From: Hyaloraphidium curvatum SAG 235-1
Lineage: Eukaryota; Fungi; Monoblepharomycota
DNA: 64,000 bases
NCBI GenBank assembly: GCA_025558095.1
Contig: JAIVFI010000038.1
Span: 434,001 to 498,000 of the forward strand
Direction: 5' to 3'
How positions within the stretch are numbered: position 1 is the stretch's first letter; every line of letters starts with the position of its first letter. The notes under the pieces are model-generated. The model saw only the letters and a list, made by a program, of their open reading frames with translations, did not search any database and was not told where the DNA came from. Of this stretch, positions 940 through 64,000 are shown piece after piece. The translations under genes were made by a program, and so were the position numbers.

Positions 940-1130
940 AGTCTTGGCCGCCGCCGCGCTGGAGCGGTGCCGAGGCCCGCGCGCCGAGGAGGAGGTTCCT
1001 CGGCGTCGTGATGGGGTTCGGCGCGTTCAGGGGGCTGCTGGTTTCGCTGGTCACGGTCGCGTTCGCGGCGTGGGGGGTGGCGAGGGGGTTCGGTGTCGCG
1101 CTGACGCTGGAGACCGTGTGCCCGGGGTGA
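940..1130 (+). pseudogene. orphan 3' fragment of the 7-TM (GRL-like) family
   Basis: 987-1130 reads RRRFLGVVMGFGAFRGLLVSLVTVAFAAWGVARGFGVALTLETVCPG*, matching the C-termini of 14576-16108 and 59317-60792; in-frame stop upstream at 918. Confidence 0.75.
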
Positions 1131-1242: not shown

Positions 1243-2781
1243 TTACCGAATCGGACAGTAAGACTGCACGGTCAAAAAGATCCCCAACCCGCGCAGCACG
1301 CTCCACAACCCCACCGCCAGCGTGACGACTGTCACGACCGCCGTCCGCAGCAGCGCGAACGACACAGGGAACCCGAAGATGCGGTACCTGTGCCTCTCGA
1401 TCCCCGCGAACGAACCCAGCAGCGCCTCGTGCGCGCGGAGCGCGTCGACCACCCGCTGAGGGGCGGGATCTGCGCGCCGGGCGGCGGCGGCGAGCATCCC
1501 CTGGATGCGCTGCCGCGCGTCGTGGTACGTCCCCGCGAGGTCCTCGATGGCGACGTTGCCGAGCGAGAGCAGGGAAAGGTCGACGGCGAACCAGCAAAGC
1601 ATCCAGAGGATCGGGGCCAGGGCGCCCAGGGTGATGCAGGAGCCGACCGAGGCGGTGATGAGGGCGAAGACGGAAAAAGCGGCGAGGCAGAGCAGGGTGT
1701 TGGTCCCGCCGGCGTGCAGGACGCCTATGCCCCAGGGGAGGGCGGCAGCGGCATTTTCGTGCAGATCCTCGTAAAGCTCGCGCCCGCCAATGAGCTCGCC
1801 GATCTCGGCTTCCGAAAGGCCACCATCGAGCGCCAGGAAGTAGCGCTCAAAGAACGAGGCAAATGCGACATTGGCGGCCCGCATGCCCAGCCGGCGGGGG
1901 AGCTCCAGGATCGCTGAGGAAGAGGAAGGGGAAGCGATGCGGCCCTGTAGGACAAAACCAAGCGTCATGAACACCAACATCGCACCAAGAAGACCTGACC
2001 ACCACACCACCACGTTTCCCAGAACTGCCCGGCAAATATTCCGAAAAGTAGAGTCCAGGGAATGCAGAAGAACATGACCGCCATGGACGCGATCAGGAGC
2101 GTGAGCTTGACAAACTGCTGCGTTCCAGCCTCTTCGCTATGTCCCCGGCACACGAGCGAGCGGGACAGGGGCAGAAGGGGTCCTTGTCTTGGTGTGCGAC
2201 CAGCTGGGAACCAGCTGGGAGCACCTGACCGAGCCAAGTTCCCGATTGTCGCCCTCCTCAGCGTCCGTTGCGCTGGCAAGCTCGGTCCAACGCACCAGGC
2301 CGGCGAGGAAATGGGCGCCCAAATCACCCCCGTCCCCCGACTCCCAGTCCCCGTTCATGGCCAGGCGGTTTGATGGCACGAAGGGATAGATGAGGTATAT
2401 GACGAACACCCATAGGAAGCCCGCGAACGTGGCAGCAATCCTGGCCCTGTCAAACGTGCCGTCGTCAAAGTACCACCCCGTGCCCAGCGTCGCCAGCATC
2501 ACGGCCATGAACCCGAAGAACCAAGGTGCGAGCCACCTCCCGAAAGGCCAACAGGCAAACTGGGCGCGCGTCAGGCCGCGCAGAAGAGGCGGCAGCGCCG
2601 CGAACAGCGACTTTTGCGTAAGCGGGTCCGCGTCGCGGGCAGCGGCGGCGGCATCGGGCGGCGGCGGGTACCAGCTGGAGTAGCCGCGCGACGAGTCGGG
2701 GTGCCGCGAGGACGGCGGGCGCGGGTAGAGCGCGAGCCATTCGCGGGCGGAGAACGACGCGGGCTTCGGGAGATCGCGCAT
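1243..2781 (-). pseudogene. frameshifted 7-TM gustatory-receptor-like (7TMIC-like) family member
   Basis: Pieces in different frames join into a paralogue of 14576-16108 (LVAHQDKDPFCPCPARSC; GSCI; YRIFGFPVSFALLRTAVVTVVTL...QSYCP). Exact 11-bp (2199-2220) and 8-bp (1998-2013) tandem duplications and a third shift near 2120 break the frame. Confidence 0.75.
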
Positions 2782-12791: not shown

Positions 12792-12995
12792 CGCGTCGCG
12801 TTCTCGGGCGCAGCGGGTCTTTCGCGTCGAGGTGCTCTTAGAGCGTGTTCCTAAGTGGTTTTCGCGGGAATCGCAAGGTCGGAAGGGCGGCGTCGCGGGT
12901 CTGCTCTTGCGGAGCGGAGCGAGCGGGCGGGCACGCGCAACGCCCTAATCTCCATCGCACTGTCTCCCGCGTAGGAACCGTGCGGCGCAGCAGCG

Positions 12996-14250
12996 ATGGC
13001 GCGTCCCGTGCCCTTTACCTTCCCGCCCGAGACCGCGGAACCCCTCGACTGGGCCCCCCTGGCCGCCATCTCGCTGTCCCCCACCGCGCTCGCCGACCCC
13101 GCCCGCAGGCGCGCCGAGGCCGCCAAGCTGCTGGACGCCGCCTCGACGCTGGGGTTCTTCTACGTCGTCGATGCCGGGTTCGGGGAGAAAGAGGTGATGG
13201 AGCAGTTCGGGATCGGGAGGGAGTACTGCGACCTCGAGTTCGACGAGAAGATGCGGTGCCCCATCGACGGACCCAACGCCAACTACTACGGTACGGCGCA
13301 GTGCTGGGTGCAATGAGCTGCTCCTGATTGGCGTGGTCGGCAGGTTTCAGCCCCCCGGGCATCCAGTACACGACCGCAGCCTCGGGAACCGCCGAGCCCC
13401 CCCGCTACGAGATGTTCAACCTCCCCAAGTTCACCCCCGAATTCGAGACCTTCCACTCCTCCGGCCCCGAGATCTTCCGGCGGTACCGCCGCCTGATCGA
13501 GCCCTTTGCGCTCAAGACCTGGAGTACGGGGATCGAGATCATGCGGCTGCTCGCGCTGGCGCTGGAGATACCGGAGGAGCGCGGCGGGGAGGACTTTTTC
13601 GCGCGGGAGCACGCGTACGGGAACCGCACGGGGTTCGCGGGCGACTCGTACCGCTACATGATGTACCACCGCACGAGCTCCGAGCAGGACGAAGCCAACA
13701 ACTTCACCCGCATCGGCGGCCACACCGACGCCGGCTCGCTCACCCTGCTTTTCTCGCACCCCATGTGCGGCCTGCAGATCCGGCTGCCCGGCGGTGCGGA
13801 GGAGTGGCGATGGGTGAAGCACGTGCCGGGGGCGATCATCGTGAACATCGCGGACGTGCTGCAGTTCTGGACCGGGGGGCTGCTCAAGAGCACGGTGCAC
13901 AGGGTGGTCACGCCGCCGAAGGACCAGCGGATGGTGGGCCGGCGGCGCGGCGCACGGGAGCCGACATGCTGACCACTTCGCCGCGCCTCCAGTACGAACG
14001 CCTCGGCCTGCTCTACTTCTTCCGCCCCCGGATCGACCTCGACCTCTCCCGCATCTGCTGCTGGCGCGAGTCCCCCCCCGTCCGCGCGCACCTCCTCTCC
14101 CTCGGCCGCACGCAGGCGCAGCTCGAGGCCGAGGAGCGTGCGGCGGAAAGGGTCGAGGTGGGTGAGTGGATCAACGCGCGGGTGAGGAAGATATTCACCC
14201 CGGTCAACAACTACGTGGGTTTCCGCGCGCATTCGTTGGTTGAGCGGTAG
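12996..14250 (+). CDS. Fe(II)/2OG dioxygenase (IPNS/DIOX-like), 2 introns
   Basis: LGFFYVV, RYMMYH, GGHTDAGSLTLLF, GLQI, VNIADVLQFWTGGLLKSTVHRVV. Confidence 0.9.
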
Positions 14251-14575
14251 CTGATGCATTTGCAGACGGGGGCGACGCAGGAGATTACCAAGGGCATCAA
14301 GCTCGTCGAGGGTGGGGGCATACACCTGCCGATCGTGGGCGCGGCGCCGGGGGGCAAGGCGAAGATATGAGTGGCGGGTTTCGGTGGTTGGCGAGGAGTT
14401 TGGCGTCTTAGCGCTCGTGCACAAGCTGCGCCGGGTTCTTTGGCATCCGGCAGATGTGAACTGTGTCTTTGAATGATTAGCGCGACCTCCGAGTTCGTGG
14501 TGCGATGAAAGTGCGTCGGGTACCGGCGGTGGCTCTTTGCGAGAACTTCCGCCGAACACGACAACGGCAACACCG

Positions 14576-16108
14576 ATGGACGACCCCGGCGGGACCTTAT
14601 TGTGCGGGCTCACGGCATCGGACCTCGCGCTGCTGCAGCCTTCCGCCCTCCCGGCGCCGGCCCCGCCGTGGAAACCGCGCGCGCCTTCCTTCCCGACCGC
14701 CGCGCGCCGCGACCCCCTCGACCGCAAGCGCGTGCTCGCGGCGCTCCGCGATCGCCCGCTCATCCGCGCCGTCGTGCGGCTGCGGCTCGCCGTCGACCCG
14801 CTCTTCGCCGCGTGGTGGAGCCGCGCCGTGGTGCTGCCTGCGTGTTCCGTGCCCTTGCTGGCCGTGCCCTGGGTGTTTGGCGGGCAGGCCTACGGCACGC
14901 GTGAACTGGTGACTGCGACGGCGGCGCTCTGCTTGAACCTGGTCGCGGGGGTGGTCATGACGGTGCGCATCGACATCACGCGGAGGCTCAGAATCGCAGG
15001 GAGCTCGGGGGACAAGGTTTCCGCCATGGGTGACCTGGCCCTCATCACGCGGTACATGGAACGTGCAGCTTCGGCGGGGGATGCTGTCGGGCAAGGGAAG
15101 TTTGCAGCGGCTGAATTGGGGCAGGAGAGTTCCCCATCGGAGGGCCCAGACGTCCTCGCCAGGATCGGCGCCAGCCCGCTTCTGGCGCACGACGACAGCG
15201 ACCCGGCCTGCTCGTGTTCGAGAAACAGCTGTGCCGGAGAACTCCCCACCCGCGCACTGTGGTCGTCCACGCTGCGCACAAGCGTCGCCCTCGTCGTCAG
15301 GTTCGCCGCCTACGGGCTGCTCCTCCGCTACTACACCCCGCTGGTCGCCCTAGGCGCGGAAAATTGGACGCACGCATGGAGTGCCGTGTTCGCAGCCCTG
15401 CGCATCCTGCTCGACGTTGTCATGTGGATCCCGATCCACAGCCTCGCCTTTGGTCCGTACCCGCCGCGCGCCGCCGCCCTCGAAGCCCGCCTGCAGCGGC
15501 GCGCCGTGCGGCTCTCCGTCATCGAGCTCGTAGAAAGCCTCGACGGCCCTCAGTCATCCCCGGACGGCGATGGCGGGGACGCCCCCGACCCGGCCTACCT
15601 CTCCATGCACCGCCTCCTCGCTCCCAACTGGCAGCGCCGCTTCCACAGCGTCCGCCTTCAGCAGAGCAACCGGAGCCTCCTCCTCGCCCTGGAACTCCTT
15701 TATGGCCTCATCTACGCCGCAGGCTCCTCCTGCCTCCCGGCCTGGGTCCTCCTCGGCATCCTCATCGACATCGTCCAGATCGTGGATGACCTGGTCGCCG
15801 TCGCGCGGTACAACGACGGCGTCGGCGCGCTGCTGGACCTGTACCGCCTCGCGCTGGCCGAGGTGCGCCGGCTGCGCGTGCACCGCCCGCGGGAGGATGT
15901 TCTGGCGGCGCACGACGCCGCGCTGTCGGGGCTGATCGGGCAGGACGGGAACCGGGCGACGTTCCTGGGCGTGAGGGTGGACTACGCCGCCGTGAGGGTG
16001 TTCGTGGTCACCCTGCTGACGGTGTTTGGCGTGGCGTGGGGGGTGCTGAAGGGTGTGGGGCTTGCGGTCACACTGGAGAGCGTGTGCCCCGGGGGCGGGG
16101 CCGGCTAG
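14576..16108 (+). CDS. 7-TM membrane protein, gustatory-receptor-like (7TMIC-like) family, intronless
   Basis: Seven hydrophobic segments; LLAHDDSDPACSCSRNSC; GSSCLPAW; ATFLGVRVDYAAVRVFVVTLLTV..LESVCP. Confidence 0.8.
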   Translation: MDDPGGTLLCGLTASDLALLQPSALPAPAPPWKPRAPSFPTAARRDPLDRKRVLAALRDRPLIRAVVRLRLAVDPLFAAWWSRAVVLPACSVPLLAVPWVFGGQAYGTRELVTATAALCLNLVAGVVMTVRIDITRRLRIAGSSGDKVSAMGDLALITRYMERAASAGDAVGQGKFAAAELGQESSPSEGPDVLARIGASPLLAHDDSDPACSCSRNSCAGELPTRALWSSTLRTSVALVVRFAAYGLLLRYYTPLVALGAENWTHAWSAVFAALRILLDVVMWIPIHSLAFGPYPPRAAALEARLQRRAVRLSVIELVESLDGPQSSPDGDGGDAPDPAYLSMHRLLAPNWQRRFHSVRLQQSNRSLLLALELLYGLIYAAGSSCLPAWVLLGILIDIVQIVDDLVAVARYNDGVGALLDLYRLALAEVRRLRVHRPREDVLAAHDAALSGLIGQDGNRATFLGVRVDYAAVRVFVVTLLTVFGVAWGVLKGVGLAVTLESVCPGGGAG

Positions 16109-16165
16109 CAATACTGCAGGGGCGTGCGTCTTTGGTTCGATCGTCTAGCTACATGCTGCGGAACG

Positions 16166-18323
16166 TCACTTTCTCGCCGCCGGCTTCCCCGTCCACGCAC
16201 CCGCCCACTCGGTGACGAGCTTCTCCGGCAGCGCATCCCCCGGCTCCCCCCGATCCACCGCAACATCTTTCCCCCCTCCTTCCGGCAGAACATCCGCTGC
16301 ATCCGGCGGCATCCGCTTCCGCCACCCCCAGAACGCCAGCCCGACTGCCGACCCCGCGGCCGCAACGCAACCGACCGCGATCCCCGCCACGGCGGCCGGC
16401 GAAAGCCCCACCGCGGGCGCGGGAGCCGGCGGCGGCGGGGTCGTTGGCAGCCCGCCGTCCACCACGACCGCTCCACCCCTTGCCCTCGCCGTGCCCGCCC
16501 ACCGGATCGCCACCGACCCCTCGGGCCGCGGGTCCGCCTGGTCCGCGAACCGCACGAGCACGTCGGCGACGAGCTCGACAGAGTACGTGCCGCTGTCCGC
16601 GGGATCGCCGTCCCCCGGGGCATAGTAGAGCGACCCGTCGGCGTGCCTCCCGAACCGCATGTCGACCGCGAAGCTCCAGGAGGCTCGGTCGGTGCCGCCC
16701 GGGTACGAGGGCTGCGTCGCGCCGTCGACGGTCAGCCCCACCCGCTCCGACGACTGATAGGTGAGGAGCAGGACGCCGTCCGCGGAGCCGGAGCCGGCGG
16801 GGACGGCGGCCAGCTTCTCGAGCGAGGCGGAGGCGATCCGCCGCGAGGGGGAGGAGACGGCCAGGACGAAAGGGACGCGGGCCGAGGGCGGCACGGCGCG
16901 CGGGGTGCCGGGGGCGAGGGAGAGGTCGGCGAGCAGCGGCCATGCGCGCGGATCGGGCGGGGCGAGGCAGTCCCCCGGGGGGAGCGCGTAAAAGGCGGCG
17001 ATGAAGTCGGTCCCGTCGGGGCAGGGGTCGGCGCCGACGCATCCGACGGCGTGGGAGAAGGCGTACCCGCCCCGGAGCCCGCACAGCTGCGTCGCGTCCA
17101 TGGCCGTGCTGAAACGGTCGAGCTTGGTGCACGAGGTCCAGTTGCCGCGGATCGACGGCCTGGCCCCGCAGGCATCCGTGTCCCAAAACGACAGGAATGC
17201 CTGTTCGAAGGCCCTGTCGGGTTTCGCGTCGCCCAGAGTGAACGGGCGCCGCTCGGTGGTCCAGCAGCGCTGCTGCAGCACCCAAACCGCGGACCCGTTG
17301 GCCGGGCCGGACCTCGGGTGAAGCGTCCACTCGTCCGTCCGCGCGGAAAACGTCGACGCTGTGCTCGGGCGCACCATGCGCAGCGTGACGTTGCGCACCG
17401 CGGTGCCGCCGACCGCGGGGGCGCCGCCCCCCGGCTCGTCGGTCCACTCGATCGCCGCCGGCGCGGTGAACTCCGCCACCTGGTGTGTACCAACATCCTC
17501 CACGCTCGAAAACACCCACCCGCACCGCTCGAGGCGGGACCACGGCCCCACCACGGCAACCGTGAAGTCCCCGCATCCCCTCCCCGCCAGCTCCGTGGAG
17601 TTCCCCCATGCCGGCCCGGCGGTGCACGCCGCCGCGTCCGCATCGCGGTGCAGCCCCGCGCGCAGCCGCACGGTCCGGGAACCCCCGAGGGGACCGAACT
17701 GCGGCGACGTCGCGGCGATCCAGAAGGTGCCGGTGGCGGGGTCGGTCCCCGAGGACGCGTACGGTGCCGGTGCCGCGGGGGGGCCGCCGTCGGGGTAGGG
17801 CGGGCACAGGGCGGGGCCGGGGGGGTCCGGGACGACGGTGATGCAGGCGCGGGTGAGGTAGCCCCACCGTCCGGCCGGTGAGGGGTAGCGCGGGAAGGCA
17901 GCACACGAGCTGCTCGGCGCCGTTGGCGTAGCCTGCCGAGACGGGCGAGGATGTTTCCGTCGGGAGCGTGTGCGCGATCCAGCGGAAGCCGGCGGCCGGG
18001 TCGGGCGCGAGGAACTCGGCCGCGGCGGCGGGCAGCTCGGTGCCGCGGAGGGCGCCGGAGCCGACGGTGCAGCGCCAGGCGCCCGCCGCGGCCGCACCGA
18101 ACAGCGGCCCGACGGCGTCGCGGCACGGCCACGTCAGCGCGCGGCCGGGCGCGAACGGCTCGACGAACGCCGCGGGCGCCGCGGGCTGCACGGCCGATGC
18201 CGCCGGGGGCGCCGCCGCCCACCGCACGATGTCGCTGTTGAACTCGGTGCACACAAACGCGGACGCCGCGGCGCTGACCTGCAGCACCAGCAATGGCAGG
18301 GCCGCCGCCCGGGCGCGCCGCAT
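16166..18323 (-). CDS. Cys-rich type I membrane protein with one apparent frameshift (~17900)
   Basis: Signal peptide in ORF 16149-18323 continues in ORF 16166-18097 (EQLV/CAAFPRYP); C-terminal TM AVAGIAVGCVAAAGSAVGLAFWGWRKR. Confidence 0.65.
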
Positions 18324-58282: not shown

Positions 58283-59107
58283 CTAACCCTCAGTTCGAAA
58301 GGTCACGTCAAAATGTCGCATCTCGATTTGAAAGTGCCGGATTGATGATCTTGGGATGCGGAACAAGCAAAGGCACGCGGTATCCGTGGTCAAAGGCGGG
58401 ATGTCCGGTCGTCCCATCGGACACGAATCGTTCCGGTGGACGCCCGGCAGGTAGTTTCTCGGCAGCTCTAAAAAGGAGAAATCTGCTGTCGACGCCCGTG
58501 GCCGGCTCTTTGACAGTGATTCGGGGGTTATCACAATCGTTGGAAGCACCCGACGACTCTGCGACTCTCTGTCGCCACCGTAATTGTACAGGTTGATTTT
58601 CGTCAAAGCAGGACAGCCCCGCGCGAATGATTCGCAGGCGCAACGGAGCAGTTCGTCGGCAACGTCGGCGTAAATGGTCAGGTTCTCCAGGGCGGGAAAC
58701 CGGCACGGAAAAGAGCTAGGTTCCGGCCCCTTGAACTCCGTGCTTCCGAAGTCGATGGTCACCTCCTTCAAGCTCGGCCACTCCAGAGAGGCGAAGAGAT
58801 AGAACGGAACCGTCGTGGGGCCATAGATCCTCGCGTCTGTGATATGGGGAGCCAGCGCCCCTGCCAGACCCGAGTTCCACAGCCAGGAAGCTTCATTCTC
58901 CTTGTCATTGACCACGAAGATGCGGCACATGCTGAACTTGTTGGCCCCGCCGGAATCCATCGCGAAGTTCTTCATGCCAGAGCCCGACCCCAAGAACGCC
59001 GACCACTCCTTGCCATCCGGTTCGTCGGTGCGCATTAAGTGACCAAGCAACCGCGTCACGAAGTACGGGAGCAAAAGCGCGTGCACCGCGCGCGATGCGA
59101 AGGCCAT
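58283..59107 (-). CDS. hypothetical protein with degenerate RNI/F-box-associated LRR-like segments
   Basis: WPSLKEVTI, FPALENLTI, CPALTKINL. Confidence 0.5.
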   Translation of the reverse strand: MAFASRAVHALLLPYFVTRLLGHLMRTDEPDGKEWSAFLGSGSGMKNFAMDSGGANKFSMCRIFVVNDKENEASWLWNSGLAGALAPHITDARIYGPTTVPFYLFASLEWPSLKEVTIDFGSTEFKGPEPSSFPCRFPALENLTIYADVADELLRCACESFARGCPALTKINLYNYGGDRESQSRRVLPTIVITPESLSKSRPRASTADFSFLELPRNYLPGVHRNDSCPMGRPDIPPLTTDTACLCLFRIPRSSIRHFQIEMRHFDVTFRTEG

Positions 59108-59316
59108 CTCGCGGTGGGTCTGGATGGGCGACGCGAGCGCCACGGCGAGAAGAGAAGCAGCTCCGGAATCAGGCCGGGAGCCGGATCTTCTTCTTCTCCG
59201 GCGTCCATTTCGTCGCCGCGTGGCTCCATCTCGCGCTTTGCAGATCGGCCCTCGAGCGCGGAGTGTTGGCAGGTGTGTGATCGATGTTTCCACGGAAACC
59301 AACGTCCCCCTCGGCA

Positions 59317-60792
59317 ATGGACGGCGCGGCGGTGATCGACGTGCCCCGCAAGAACGGGCCGTGGAGCGACGTGGCGTGGCTCGGCCTCCTCCCGGGAGAA
59401 CTGACCCGGGACGGCGGAGCCCCGTGGGCAGCCGTGCCTCCCGACCCGGCGCGAGCGGGGCGCGACGCGGACCCGCTCTCGCCCGAACGCGTGGCGCAGG
59501 TGCTCTCCGACGCCGGGTCGCCGGCGCTGGGCGCCTTTATGGCCTTCCGCATGCGCGCTCTGGCCCGCGCGTCGCTATGGCAGTTCGCACTCTGGTTCTC
59601 AATGGCCACGTTCGCATCCCCGCTCTTGGCCGTGCCTTTTGTCGTAGGCACATACTCGTCGCGGGCACTGGGCACTGTTGTTGCCTCATTTCTCTGGTCG
59701 ACCATGGCGTGGTTCGTCGTCAACGCGTTCGGCACGCGGGTTAACTCGGGCCACAGGGATCTCGCGTTCGAGCAGTTCGTGCGCTACGCTCTGTTGCTCG
59801 CGACGAATTCGTCGGACACGGATTCGCTCGTGGAGCACTGGGAGAGGGATTCACGTTGTCCCTGCCCCGCCCCGACGTGCCTTGGCCGGTTTCGGACAAC
59901 TTTCGCTCGCTCTCTTGTTGTCCGCACAGTGTACACGTTTGCTTGCCTTTGGACGGCGTACACTTTTCTTGCCTTTTACACCCAGCTGGTGACGCTGGCG
60001 GGGTACACATGGACGCATGCGTGGAGTCTAGCTTTCGCCGTGCTCGGTCTGCTCGCACGGACCATGTGGTACATCGCGGGCGCGCTCGTATTGCCGATGA
60101 GCATGAACGCCGCTCTGCTGGACGTCTCCAGTCGGCTCGAGGTCCGAGCGTTCGATGTTTCGCTGGGCCAACTTGTGGAGTCGGCGGCAGCCGCAGTCTC
60201 CTCATTCGGAGCCGAACGGGAAGCAGCTCAAGAACCTACGTCCCTACCCTCCATTGCCGCCGGCCCGTACTGGATCGTGCACGACGCTCTGGCCCCACGA
60301 ATGCGCACCAGGTTCGCCGAATTCCGCCCGAACAGCCACCTCGTGCTCGCTGGCATCGCCATCGAGCTGATATCGGGCTTCATCTACGCCGTCGGCTCCT
60401 CCTGTCTGCCCGCCTGGGTGCTCATGTCCGTCGCCACGTGGATCTCGTTCGCCCTCTCGGACCTCGTCACCGTCGCCCGCGCCAACGCCCGCGCCGGGGC
60501 CGTCGCGGACCTGCACCGCGCCGCCGCCGCCGACCTGCACCGCCTCGTGCTCTCCCTCCCCCCTACGGAGCTTGCGGCCCCGCTCCGCAGGCAGCTCCTG
60601 GACCGCGAGTCCGCGCTCGCCTCCGTGGCGGGCGAGGCGGAGCACATGCGGGCCAGGTTCGCGGGGTTGGTCGTGGACACGGGGGTCGTGAGGACCGTGC
60701 TTGCGACGGGGCTGACGGTGGGGGTGGCGCTGTTTGGGATAGTGAGGGGGTCGGTGGCGGTGACGCTGGAGAGCGTGTGCAACACGGCGTGA
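59317..60792 (+). CDS. 7-TM GRL/7TMIC-like family member, intronless
   Basis: LVEHWERDSRCPCPAPTC; WTHAWS; GSSCLPAW; ARFAGLVVDTGVVRTVLATGLTV..LESVC. Confidence 0.8.
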   Translation: MDGAAVIDVPRKNGPWSDVAWLGLLPGELTRDGGAPWAAVPPDPARAGRDADPLSPERVAQVLSDAGSPALGAFMAFRMRALARASLWQFALWFSMATFASPLLAVPFVVGTYSSRALGTVVASFLWSTMAWFVVNAFGTRVNSGHRDLAFEQFVRYALLLATNSSDTDSLVEHWERDSRCPCPAPTCLGRFRTTFARSLVVRTVYTFACLWTAYTFLAFYTQLVTLAGYTWTHAWSLAFAVLGLLARTMWYIAGALVLPMSMNAALLDVSSRLEVRAFDVSLGQLVESAAAAVSSFGAEREAAQEPTSLPSIAAGPYWIVHDALAPRMRTRFAEFRPNSHLVLAGIAIELISGFIYAVGSSCLPAWVLMSVATWISFALSDLVTVARANARAGAVADLHRAAAADLHRLVLSLPPTELAAPLRRQLLDRESALASVAGEAEHMRARFAGLVVDTGVVRTVLATGLTVGVALFGIVRGSVAVTLESVCNTA

Positions 60793-61068: not shown

Positions 61069-62529
61069 ATGGGAAACGAACCGGACGCGGCCGCGCCTGC
61101 CCTCGCGCCGGGCAAACGTGCCGCGCTCGCGTTCTCGGCACCGGAGCTCCTCGCCATCTTCCCCGCCCCGCTGCCCGACCCGGATGCGCCGCGCCTCGCT
61201 GCTGACGACGAGGCGGCCGACCCCGCTTTGCAGATCCGCGAGGCGGCGCCGCTCTCGAAAGACGCGTTTTTTGCGCTGCTCAAGAACCACGGCGCGGCCA
61301 GATGGGCGGCCGCCCTGCACCTGTGGTTCCGCCCGTTTTTCGCGCGCTTCGCCGCGATGACCGTGCCAATCATGCTGTTGACGGCCGCGATGACGGCCCC
61401 GCTGTGGCTGTTCAACGGGACGCAGCTCCTCTTTTCCGCCCGCTCGCTTGCCATCGCAACCACGGTGCAGGCTGCGTACTCGGGCTTGTTAATTCCCGGA
61501 CTGGTCTTTACTACGTGGTCTGCGCGCGGGATAGCAGGAGTGCACCGGACGCGAGTCAACGAGGATTTTTCCGGGCACGTCTACGGTGGCGTCGCGCGCT
61601 GGGCCCAGCTCTGCGCGGAAGGCAGGTCGAGGCTGATTCAGCACGACGGCGGGGACCCTCTGTGCCCGTGCAGCTCGCCTTCCTGCGCATTGCGTTCGGC
61701 CGATACGGCTGCAATGACGGCTCTCTTCCTGAATTCTGTCTTCTCGTGCTTCGAGTCGTTCGTCTTCTTCGCGCAGACTTGGACGGCAACGGTGACCTTT
61801 GCTCCCAGAACCTTTGCCAGCCCTTGGAGCACAGTTCTTGCCGTATTCAACATTGCCGCTATCTCCATCTACCAACTTGTGCGCATTCCCGCTGACCTCG
61901 TTCAGAACCCACCACTCGACCTCGCCAAGCGAATCCGCCACCGCGCTGTCCTCATGCTGATGCAGGATGTGGTCGCGCGACGCGATTCACTGTCCCTGCC
62001 GGCCTCCACCGAACCCTATGTTGCCTTCCACTATTCCTTGTCTACGGCATGGGCTTCGAACCTCGCTCGCTTCCATGGCGGCTCTGGCTTTGTCTTGTTT
62101 GTGGCCGGCTTTTGCTTGGCCAACTGCATAGTCATGGCCGCTGCGGACGGCTGCATCCCTCTCGCTTGGCCTCTCCTCCTGCTCGAAGTTCTCGCGTCCT
62201 CCACGCTTCGCATGATCTTTCTGACCGCTTCTTGGAACGCCGGAATCTCTTCCATCCGCGCACTGTACAGTTCCGCCGCGACCCAGCTCCTCAAGCGCGA
62301 GACCGACCCCGCCTTGGGCTCCCCTGCACGGACGCACGCGGAGCTGCTCCGCGCGTTCGCGGCCGACGACATGCGCGGGAAATGGCTGGGCATACCCGTG
62401 GATTACTCCGTGGCAAGGACGGTGGCCGTGACGGGGGTCACCGTGGTCCTGGGGCTGTGGACGGTGGTCAGGGGGGCTGGCGTGGTTTTCACGATCCAGA
62501 ACGTCTGCGGTGGGATCCCTGTAGATTGA
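61069..62529 (+). CDS. 7-TM GRL/7TMIC-like family member, intronless, tandem to the previous gene
   Basis: LIQHDGGDPLCPCSSPSC; DGCIPLAW; KWLGIPVDYSVARTVAVTGVTV..IQNVC. Confidence 0.8.
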   Translation: MGNEPDAAAPALAPGKRAALAFSAPELLAIFPAPLPDPDAPRLAADDEAADPALQIREAAPLSKDAFFALLKNHGAARWAAALHLWFRPFFARFAAMTVPIMLLTAAMTAPLWLFNGTQLLFSARSLAIATTVQAAYSGLLIPGLVFTTWSARGIAGVHRTRVNEDFSGHVYGGVARWAQLCAEGRSRLIQHDGGDPLCPCSSPSCALRSADTAAMTALFLNSVFSCFESFVFFAQTWTATVTFAPRTFASPWSTVLAVFNIAAISIYQLVRIPADLVQNPPLDLAKRIRHRAVLMLMQDVVARRDSLSLPASTEPYVAFHYSLSTAWASNLARFHGGSGFVLFVAGFCLANCIVMAAADGCIPLAWPLLLLEVLASSTLRMIFLTASWNAGISSIRALYSSAATQLLKRETDPALGSPARTHAELLRAFAADDMRGKWLGIPVDYSVARTVAVTGVTVVLGLWTVVRGAGVVFTIQNVCGGIPVD

Positions 62530-62776
62530 GACGGTGTTGCCAAAGTCTTGCTGTTACTGTGTCGATTTCCAAAACAGAGCGATCGGTCCCAATGATTTCA
62601 TGCACGCGGCTCCCCTTCTATGATTATGCCCTAAAGTACAGCTGCAACCCCCGCCCGGCCATCCGCCGGGCCCGTTATAGATATCCTTTGCGATGGAATG
62701 CTGGAATCTGGAGGCACGATCAGCTCCCGACGGTTGCCCCACGGCCGCGGCACCGTACCGACAATCTGGTAGCCCA

Positions 62777-64000
62777 TCACCCGAAGCACACGCTCCTCGC
62801 CGCGCACGAGCCCTGGAAGCAGCACCCGCTCTCGGGGCACTGGTCGAACGTCGACGCGGTGCAGCCGCCGCCAGTGCCGCCGGGCGCGGGCGCGCCGGCG
62901 CACTGCGGCGCGCCGGGGCCGAAGCACTGCTCGCAGGGCGCGCAGGCGCCGCCGATGCAGCAGCCGGTGGGGCACTGGTCGACGGTGGAGGCGGTGCAGG
63001 AGCCGCCGGTGCCCGAGCTGCCCGAGCCGCCGCCCGAGGAGCCGGAGCACTGCGGGGCGCCGGGGCCGAAGCACGAAGCGCAGGGAGCGCAGGTGCCGCC
63101 GATGCAGCAGCCGCTGGAGGGGCACTGATCGAAAGTCGAGGCGGAGCAGGAGCCGCCCGAGCCGCCGCCCGAGGGGGGCGGCGGAGGGGGAGCGCCGGAG
63201 CACTGCGGGGAGCCGGCGCCGTAGCACGAAGCGCAGGGCTCTGGAAGAAGGAGGGCAGGGTGAGGAGAGAGGACGGATGGAGGCGCGCCAAAGACACCCA
63301 CGGCAAGATCCGCCGATGCAGCAACCGGTCGAGCACTGGTCAAAGGTCGAGGCGGTGCAGCTACCCGAGCCACCCGACGAGCCACCGCCGCCCGACGGCG
63401 GCGGCGGCGGCGGGGGCGGGGGGGGCGCGGAGCCGCCGGCGCAGTTGATGGTGATCCAGTCGACCTGCATCCTGTAGTCCGGGTTGTACTCGTTGCTCCA
63501 GTCTGTCGGGCCGCCGGACCAGGCGACGGTGCCGGGAGGCGTGCCGACGCCGGCGTCCCACAGGTCGAAGACGATCTTGGCGGGCCTGTCGGGGAAGCGC
63601 GAGCCCATGTCGCCGCGGTACAGCATGCGGACGGTGTTGCCGTTGATCTTCCAGGCGATGTAGTCGGAGGTGCGCTCCACGCAGACGGTCTGGACCTCGT
63701 TGAAGGCGTCGCCGTGGCCGTGGTACTGGCCGTTGACGCCGTAGATGGCGTAGCCCTGCGAGAAGTAGTTGGTCTGGACCTCGAAGACGTTGCGGCCGAC
63801 CCATTCGAAGTCGATCTCGTCGTCGATGTCTGGGCGGGGGATCGCGGGCACCGTCAGCTGAGGAACGCAAGGGCGCCGGGCGCGGGGGGAGGGGGGACCC
63901 ACCCTGGCCGGGCACGTAGGAGGCGATGAAGATGGCCGAGACGACGCCGCCGCCGCGACCGATGCGGACGCCCGTGCAGATCTCGCCGAACTGCCACCAC
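62777..64000 (-). CDS. GH16 (Crh/Utr2-like) transglycosylase with four C-terminal Cys-rich repeats; 5' end outside the window
   Basis: GVVSAIFI, DEIDFEWVG catalytic motif, VQTNYF, LWDAG, WSGG..DW; repeats CxASTFDQC..GCCxGGxC. Confidence 0.9.

Follow-up and report, generated by a model that had tools for sequence, protein, structure and literature searches.

A large, divergent family of proteins with a predicted odorant/gustatory receptor-like fold in the fungus Hyaloraphidium curvatum

The genome of Hyaloraphidium curvatum, a monoblepharid chytrid in the NCBI taxonomy, encodes a large and fast-evolving family of seven-helix proteins that probably share the fold of the insect odorant and gustatory receptor (OR/GR) superfamily, the 7TMICs, and that may work as a set of ligand-gated channels. 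Structure prediction gives good support to membership in the 7TMIC fold superfamily, while a function as ion channels and in chemosensation is suggested only by analogy with the insect receptors. All positions given below refer to the window, the whole stretch of 64,000 nucleotides that was analysed, unless another contig is named.

Five members of the family lie in the window. Three of them are single open frames on the plus strand: copy A (14576-16108, 510 aa, family HMM E 2e-120), which is intact and whose protein was modelled, copy B (59317-60792, 491 aa, E 1e-115), which is the first of a tandem pair, and copy C (61069-62529, 486 aa, E 2e-121), which follows 277 bp 3' of B and is identical to the 486-aa protein P0123 of a public representative library. 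Copy D (1243-2781, minus strand) is frame-broken and is a probable pseudogene. The family HMM matches it in four pieces that occupy three frames, namely HMM positions 8-178 (2772-2257), 179-212 (2215-2114), 204-249 (2141-2004) and 246-493 (2007-1249), and its main frame is interrupted by a TAG at 2137-2139; the open reading frame listing likewise gives two frame-compatible pieces with a stop between them. From about 2257 to 2007 the homology leaves the main frame for two others, which requires three or more changes of frame; this out-of-frame stretch retains the TM3/EL2 segment as well as the H..D..CPC....C motif, which is intact. Arranged tail to tail with copy D is fragment E (969-1130, plus strand), which consists of the last 53 codons (969-1127) and a stop, and thus of TM7b and the C-terminus (HMM 441-493, E 9e-18); the family HMM detected no homology upstream of it. 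A six-frame scan of the window with this HMM, built from 97 members, yielded matches at A, B, C, D and E and nowhere else. Together with the open reading frame listing, it places all five elements where the sequence-only reading had put them. That reading had called them divergent, intronless paralogues. Indeed, A, B and C can be aligned end to end at 24-38% identity, C sharing just about 25% identity with A and B, and the window copies lack introns, the RNA contigs on A being unspliced. The five copies are not one another's closest relatives: the nearest paralogue outside the window is 50% identical to A, 72% to B (71% by BLAST), 39% to C, 62% to D and 81% to E, and that of B, which sits on another contig, shows a dN/dS of 0.32.

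By hydropathy, A, B and C each have seven hydrophobic segments, laid out as three hairpins (TM1-2, TM3-4 and TM5-6) and a single TM7. Their lengths of 486-510 aa lie at the upper edge of the approximately 350-500 aa of seven-helix 7TMICs. The long loops after TM4 and TM6 that had been described from the sequence are present in all three, and there is another long loop after TM2. Among the 97 sequences, the N-terminus and each of the three long loops hold 8-10 lysine plus arginine residues, compared to 1.0 in EL1, 0.4 in EL2, 0.0 in EL3 and 0.4 in the C-tail. Under the positive-inside rule, this distribution points to an N-in/C-out topology with all long loops in the cytoplasm, the inverse of that of GPCRs, and the collinear alignment to receptors with a cytoplasmic N-terminus agrees with it. 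The intracellular loops, with mean lengths of about 80 (IL1), 81 (IL2) and 66 (IL3) residues, are much longer than the extracellular ones (EL1 about 8, EL2 14 and EL3 4), as is characteristic of 7TMICs. A GPCR reading, which calls for the N-out orientation, was rejected on the charge bias and on the ranking of structural matches.

Conservation is strongest towards the C-terminus, as the sequence-only reading had proposed. TM7b is the most conserved segment, with a column entropy of 1.63 versus 2.7-3.3 in TM1-6, and the C-tail is highly conserved as well, while TM1-TM4 are the most variable (2.9-3.3). The C-terminal motif that had been put forward, [FW]xGxxVx(4)RxxxxTxxT..G..T.(E/Q)..C, is essentially right, except that in copy A five residues rather than four separate the V from the R. 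Invariant or near-invariant positions include H205, D209, C212, C214 and C219 in IL1, W264 and W268 in EL2, R305 and R309 in IL2, N413, P438 and G465, R474 and T482 in TM7b, and G495 in the tail; in addition, C386 at the outer end of TM5 is invariant and C504 in the C-terminal tail is near-invariant. The IL1 residues form an H-x3-D-x2-C-x-C-x4-C motif (15188-15232, plus strand; A residues 205-219) in the loop between TM2 and TM3, where the model of copy A has a pLDDT of about 95. H205, C212 and C219 are present in all 97 sequences, C214 in 99% and D209 in 94%. The charge-based topology would place this motif on the cytoplasmic side, and it is most simply read as a putative metal (zinc) site. 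As for C386 and C504, they could form a disulfide on the outer face that would tie the C-tail to the TM5-TM6 turn. To our knowledge, neither the His/Cys motif of IL1 nor this cysteine pair has a counterpart in insect receptors. In a subset of paralogues the family HMM matches in two pieces that break at position ~363, at the outer end of TM5 (G000:C38:104123-105652, C37:35725-37344, C12:731482-732948, C7:67463-69022 and C32:411646-413190). In each case the unmatched 27-60 nt lie within one open frame, which suggests that the TM5-TM6 turn carries an in-frame insertion.

An AlphaFold2 model of copy A, made from the 97-sequence alignment and no template, has a mean pLDDT of 88.7 and a pTM of 0.88, and none of the five models falls below a pLDDT of 86. 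It predicts TM1 at residues 61-101, TM2 at 108-142, TM3 at 223-250, TM4 at 267-290, a cytoplasmic helix at 297-323, and TM5 and TM6 at 340-384 and 389-436, both of which exceed a membrane span by about 25 residues. TM7 (15893-16057, plus strand; residues 440-494) is split: DSSP assigns TM7a to 440-454, the strands of a beta-hairpin between 462 and 468, and TM7b to 470-494. Two small strands, at 386-388 and 497-499, are predicted side by side, so that the C-tail adjoins the TM5-TM6 turn. Judged from secondary structure and alignment ranges, the model thus has both the anchor domain of 7TMICs, in which long TM4-TM6 helices extend below the bundle, and the division of TM7 into TM7a and TM7b. In a Foldseek search of the PDB, insect GRs and ORs fill ranks 1-12, with weak E-values of 0.013-0.18 and probabilities of up to 1.0; insect OR, GR and Orco structures are the best matches, nothing else reaches that level, and the model is collinear with them from TM1 to TM7b. 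The nearest entries in the ESM Atlas are unannotated animal clusters (Cnidaria, Echinodermata and Arthropoda) with TM scores of 0.54-0.57 by query and 0.62-0.68 by matched row, and a plant DUF3537 protein matches residues 53-492 at 0.52 by query and 0.59 by matched row. The sequence-only reading had likened these proteins to insect OR/GR, GRL and plant DUF3537 proteins with a split TM7. The layout, the split TM7, the OR/GR fold and the matches to DUF3537 and to animal GRL-like clusters bear this out, but the GR signature motif in TM7 is absent. None of the observations that it had named as contradicting it, namely a GPCR-like N-out topology, a different number of TM segments or a lack of structural similarity to 7TMICs, was made. 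In BFVD, the matches are weak and confined to giant viruses (A0A3G4ZRZ0 of Edafosvirus and A0A1V0SCD1 of Catovirus, Foldseek probability 0.97 and 0.90), and the ESM Atlas holds a Nucleocytoviricota cluster with a TM score of 0.71 by matched row. These best viral neighbours of the model are uncharacterised proteins of about 310-440 aa, and the predicted similarity hints that 7TMIC-like proteins may exist in giant viruses.

How large is the family? At least 141 distinct loci are present in the 32-Mb H. curvatum assembly, as the union of three assembly searches in each of which about 85 candidates were scored, nearly all of them positive. In a census independent of the homology searches, a pattern of 33 DNA places encoding D-x2-C-P-C-x4-C occurs at 257 sites genome-wide versus 4 for the reversed control. 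Since 94% of the aligned members have D209 and 85% have P213, the proline being absent from copy A itself, the census extrapolates to about 300 genes, and we estimate the family at approximately 250-320 copies. Thus, the count of five copies in 64 kb that had been given holds for the window, but not as the size of the family. Most contigs carry copies, which are often paired in tandem or head to head (B/C, and pairs on contigs C14, C22, C12, C9 and C39), and most loci are complete, stop-free open frames. When 1.8 billion cluster representatives were searched exhaustively with HMMER, 249 matched, and of the 20 whose source was checked, 13 are from H. curvatum, the sole named organism among them, and seven are environmental proteins. 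The closest database proteins are annotated as 'hypothetical protein DFJ74DRAFT_...' of H. curvatum. A word-indexed search returned four close paralogues with either a protein or a profile query, as the method is too insensitive for this family. Losses are evident too: six further loci elsewhere in the genome contain an in-frame stop, and short terminal relics occur beyond the window, for example an 84-codon frame on contig C40. The evolution by birth and death that had been surmised from the window is backed by the tandem pairs, the frame-broken copy, the terminal relics, the in-frame stops at other loci and the dN/dS values of the youngest pairs given below.

What might such a repertoire do? 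In insect receptors, ligands are bound in a pocket within the outer half of the bundle. Four subunits are joined through a cytoplasmic anchor domain (TM4-6 and TM7a), and TM7b lines the pore (PMC9998090, citing Butterwick 2018 and del Marmol 2021). By analogy, the fungal proteins would form tetramers through their cytoplasmic anchor domain, the conserved TM7b would line a cation pore, and the variable TM1-TM4 half would provide diverse ligand pockets, such that the repertoire would constitute a set of ligand-gated channels through which the cell would perceive external or metabolic chemicals. The cytoplasmic His/Asp/Cys3 motif in IL1, as a possible metal site, and the C386/C504 pair, as a possible disulfide, would be additions private to the family. 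The constancy of TM7b and the anchor, combined with variability in TM1-4, fits the division of labour of insect receptors, and this pattern, along with hundreds of divergent copies that turn over, favours an array of ligand-gated channels. Since H. curvatum is non-motile and is not known to have a flagellated stage, such channels would more likely regulate uptake, growth or development than chemotaxis. A bolder proposal, which we put forward tentatively and regard as somewhat doubtful, is that a non-swimming unicellular fungus has independently built an array of ligand-gated 7TMIC channels of insect size (about 300 genes) as a chemical sense, regulated through a metal-binding His/Cys module in the cytoplasmic IL1 that is private to the family.

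It is possible, albeit rather unlikely, that the proteins have the 7TMIC fold but do not form a chemoreceptor array, serving some other purpose as channels or scaffolds, for example the sensing of light or oxidants (as for nematode LITE-1 and GUR-3), developmental signalling (as for cnidarian GRLs) or a function in internal membranes. Such a role would be in keeping with a non-motile organism, and the invariant cytoplasmic His/Cys motif might sense redox state or metals instead of binding odorants. Moreover, hardly any 7TMIC outside insects has been assigned a function (PMC9998090). However, a family of this size whose divergent copies vary in TM1-4, conserve TM7b and are continually born and lost shows the pattern typical of receptors for diverse ligands, which is hard to square with one housekeeping role.

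The affinity to insect receptors is seen in structure rather than in sequence. For the five window proteins and all 97 members, Pfam gave nothing beyond scattered sub-threshold noise, a sequence-profile search of the PDB returned nothing relevant, and the best score of a language-model feature search of the ESM Atlas (0.76) was uninformative. The 97 members show no sequence similarity to 7tm_6, 7tm_7, Trehalose_recp or DUF3537 even at E-values up to 10, and the Pfam models for DUF3537 and 7tm_7 matched neither the H. curvatum genome nor the control genomes. All structures used to train AlphaFold2 predate the deposition of the first Orco structure, so that the predictor did not merely reproduce a fold it had already seen. 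We consider it highly improbable that the resemblance is convergent or a modelling artefact and that these proteins form an unrelated, new seven-helix family, although the undetectable sequence similarity speaks for it, as do the structural alignments to insect receptors, with an rmsd of 5-6 Å and 5-12% identity, and the tendency of helical bundles to reach high chance scores. Sequence similarity is in fact often undetectable among accepted 7TMIC families (PMC9998090; bioRxiv 10.1101/2023.08.30.555482), and it therefore does not define the superfamily.

While a common 7TMIC fold is well supported, the fungal family also differs from the systems already described. Compared to the insect OR, GR and Orco structures (AaegOR10 8V00/8V02, Orco 6C70, DmGr43a 8JM9, BmGr9 8VC1 and MhOR5 7LIC), it is without detectable sequence similarity and lacks the GR TM7 motif TYhhhhhQF: the TM7b consensus (R474, T479, T482, L491, R492 and G495) does not have such spacing, and at most the T is shared. 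On this sequence evidence, the family should not be filed as GR or GRL in the narrow, motif-defined sense. The fungal proteins are also longer (about 490-520 aa), their IL1 of about 80-100 residues carries the invariant His/Cys motif, they have the conserved C386/C504 pair, and their host is unicellular. The few GRLs that the sequence-only reading had mentioned from chytrids are indeed on record, one each in two Spizellomyces species (SpunGRL1 and SpalGRL1; PMC7746228). They are likewise candidate 7TMICs of early-diverging zoosporic fungi and likewise lack most of the GR TM7 motif, but they are set apart, by their published description, as a single gene per species from the several hundred estimated for H. 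curvatum. In Benton et al. 2020, six GRLs each are given for Thecamonas and Vitrella, and 4-12 DUF3537 genes for plants (PMC7746228); plant DUF3537 (PF12056) is a structural match to copy A but not a Pfam match to any of the 97 members. The PHTF-like 'Class-B' 7TMICs share with the fungal family the core fold and an enlarged first intracellular loop (bioRxiv 10.1101/2023.08.30.555482), but the fungal loop has only about 80-100 residues, and its best structural neighbours, namely OR/GR, animal GRL-like clusters and DUF3537, are of Class-A types. Himmel et al. 2023 extended 7TMICs across the tree of life, and the text and one supplement of that study do not mention Hyaloraphidium (bioRxiv 10.1101/2023.08.30.555482). 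A full-text literature search retrieved no paper describing the family, and we found no published non-animal 7TMIC repertoire of comparable size.

The family is not strictly private to the species. Contigs of sequencing run SRR26194948 (L031 and L032, from Logan) and of JGI metagenome 3300043314 (L033 and L034) also encode full-length members that share its motif, with a GC content of about 53-55% and no more than 32% identity to the H. curvatum copies. Since the DNA of an environmental homologue gave no match to the H. curvatum genome, and given its GC of about 53% and its low protein identity, it comes from another organism. Beside one environmental member lies a UDP-galactopyranose-mutase-like gene that is closest to chytrid proteins (55% to Gaertneriomyces). 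The repertoire that had been proposed as lineage-specific therefore has members in a chytrid-like fungus and in the JGI metagenome as well. Short gaps, which may be introns, interrupt the HMM match in L032 (2098/2154) and L033 (2173/2194).

The family is under purifying selection and is at least partly transcribed. For the youngest pairs, Nei-Gojobori dN/dS is 0.25-0.45 at a dS of 0.25-1.2, and selection is thus purifying but fairly relaxed. One public sequencing run contains 82% of the sampled words of copy A. On 12800-17800, its contigs skip three GT..AG intervals of 53, 59 and 51 nt in the gene that precedes A, which indicates that the run is RNA, and the contigs on A itself (14843-15804 and 15852-16352) are unspliced and without a single difference; they show transcription of copy A as such, and neither transcript ends nor levels. 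The upstream gene (12800-14693, plus strand) has RNA-supported GT..AG introns at 13290-13342, 13933-13991 and 14215-14265. Its RNA contig extends to 14693 and overlaps the first 118 nt of the A frame, either as a 3' UTR reaching into A or as read-through. The long open reading frames flanking A (16166-18097, minus strand) and B (58283-59317, minus strand) have no Pfam match, and RNA contigs cover parts of 16352-17572. The frame at 62631-63902 (minus strand) encodes a GH16 glycoside-hydrolase domain (Pfam E 3e-16), and 3' of copy C overlapping frames encode a proline-rich linker and repeated cysteine-rich modules. That the copies are non-functional or selfish repeated frames of a mobile element rather than host genes, as their high, dispersed copy number, broken copies and terminal fragments might suggest, is scarcely credible and was rejected, since dN/dS is well below 1, paralogues are mostly less than 50% identical and the family is therefore old, no transposon domain was found in or beside the window copies, most loci remain complete and copy A is transcribed.

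Published non-animal 7TMIC families are small (PMC7746228), and a repertoire of some 250-320 transcribed, fast-diversifying genes under selection, in a fungus whose genome measures 32 Mb, would be the largest that we have found described. Intronless genes in a culturable microbe would allow testing whether the OR/GR fold is a ligand-gated channel generally, and asking what such channels sense in a cell that has neither neurons nor flagella. A high-confidence model obtained without a template from 97 paralogues also helps to tell which parts of the fold are universal. If the family is indeed a fungal chemical-sense array, large repertoires of the OR/GR fold would not be an animal invention, and would require neither neurons nor motility.
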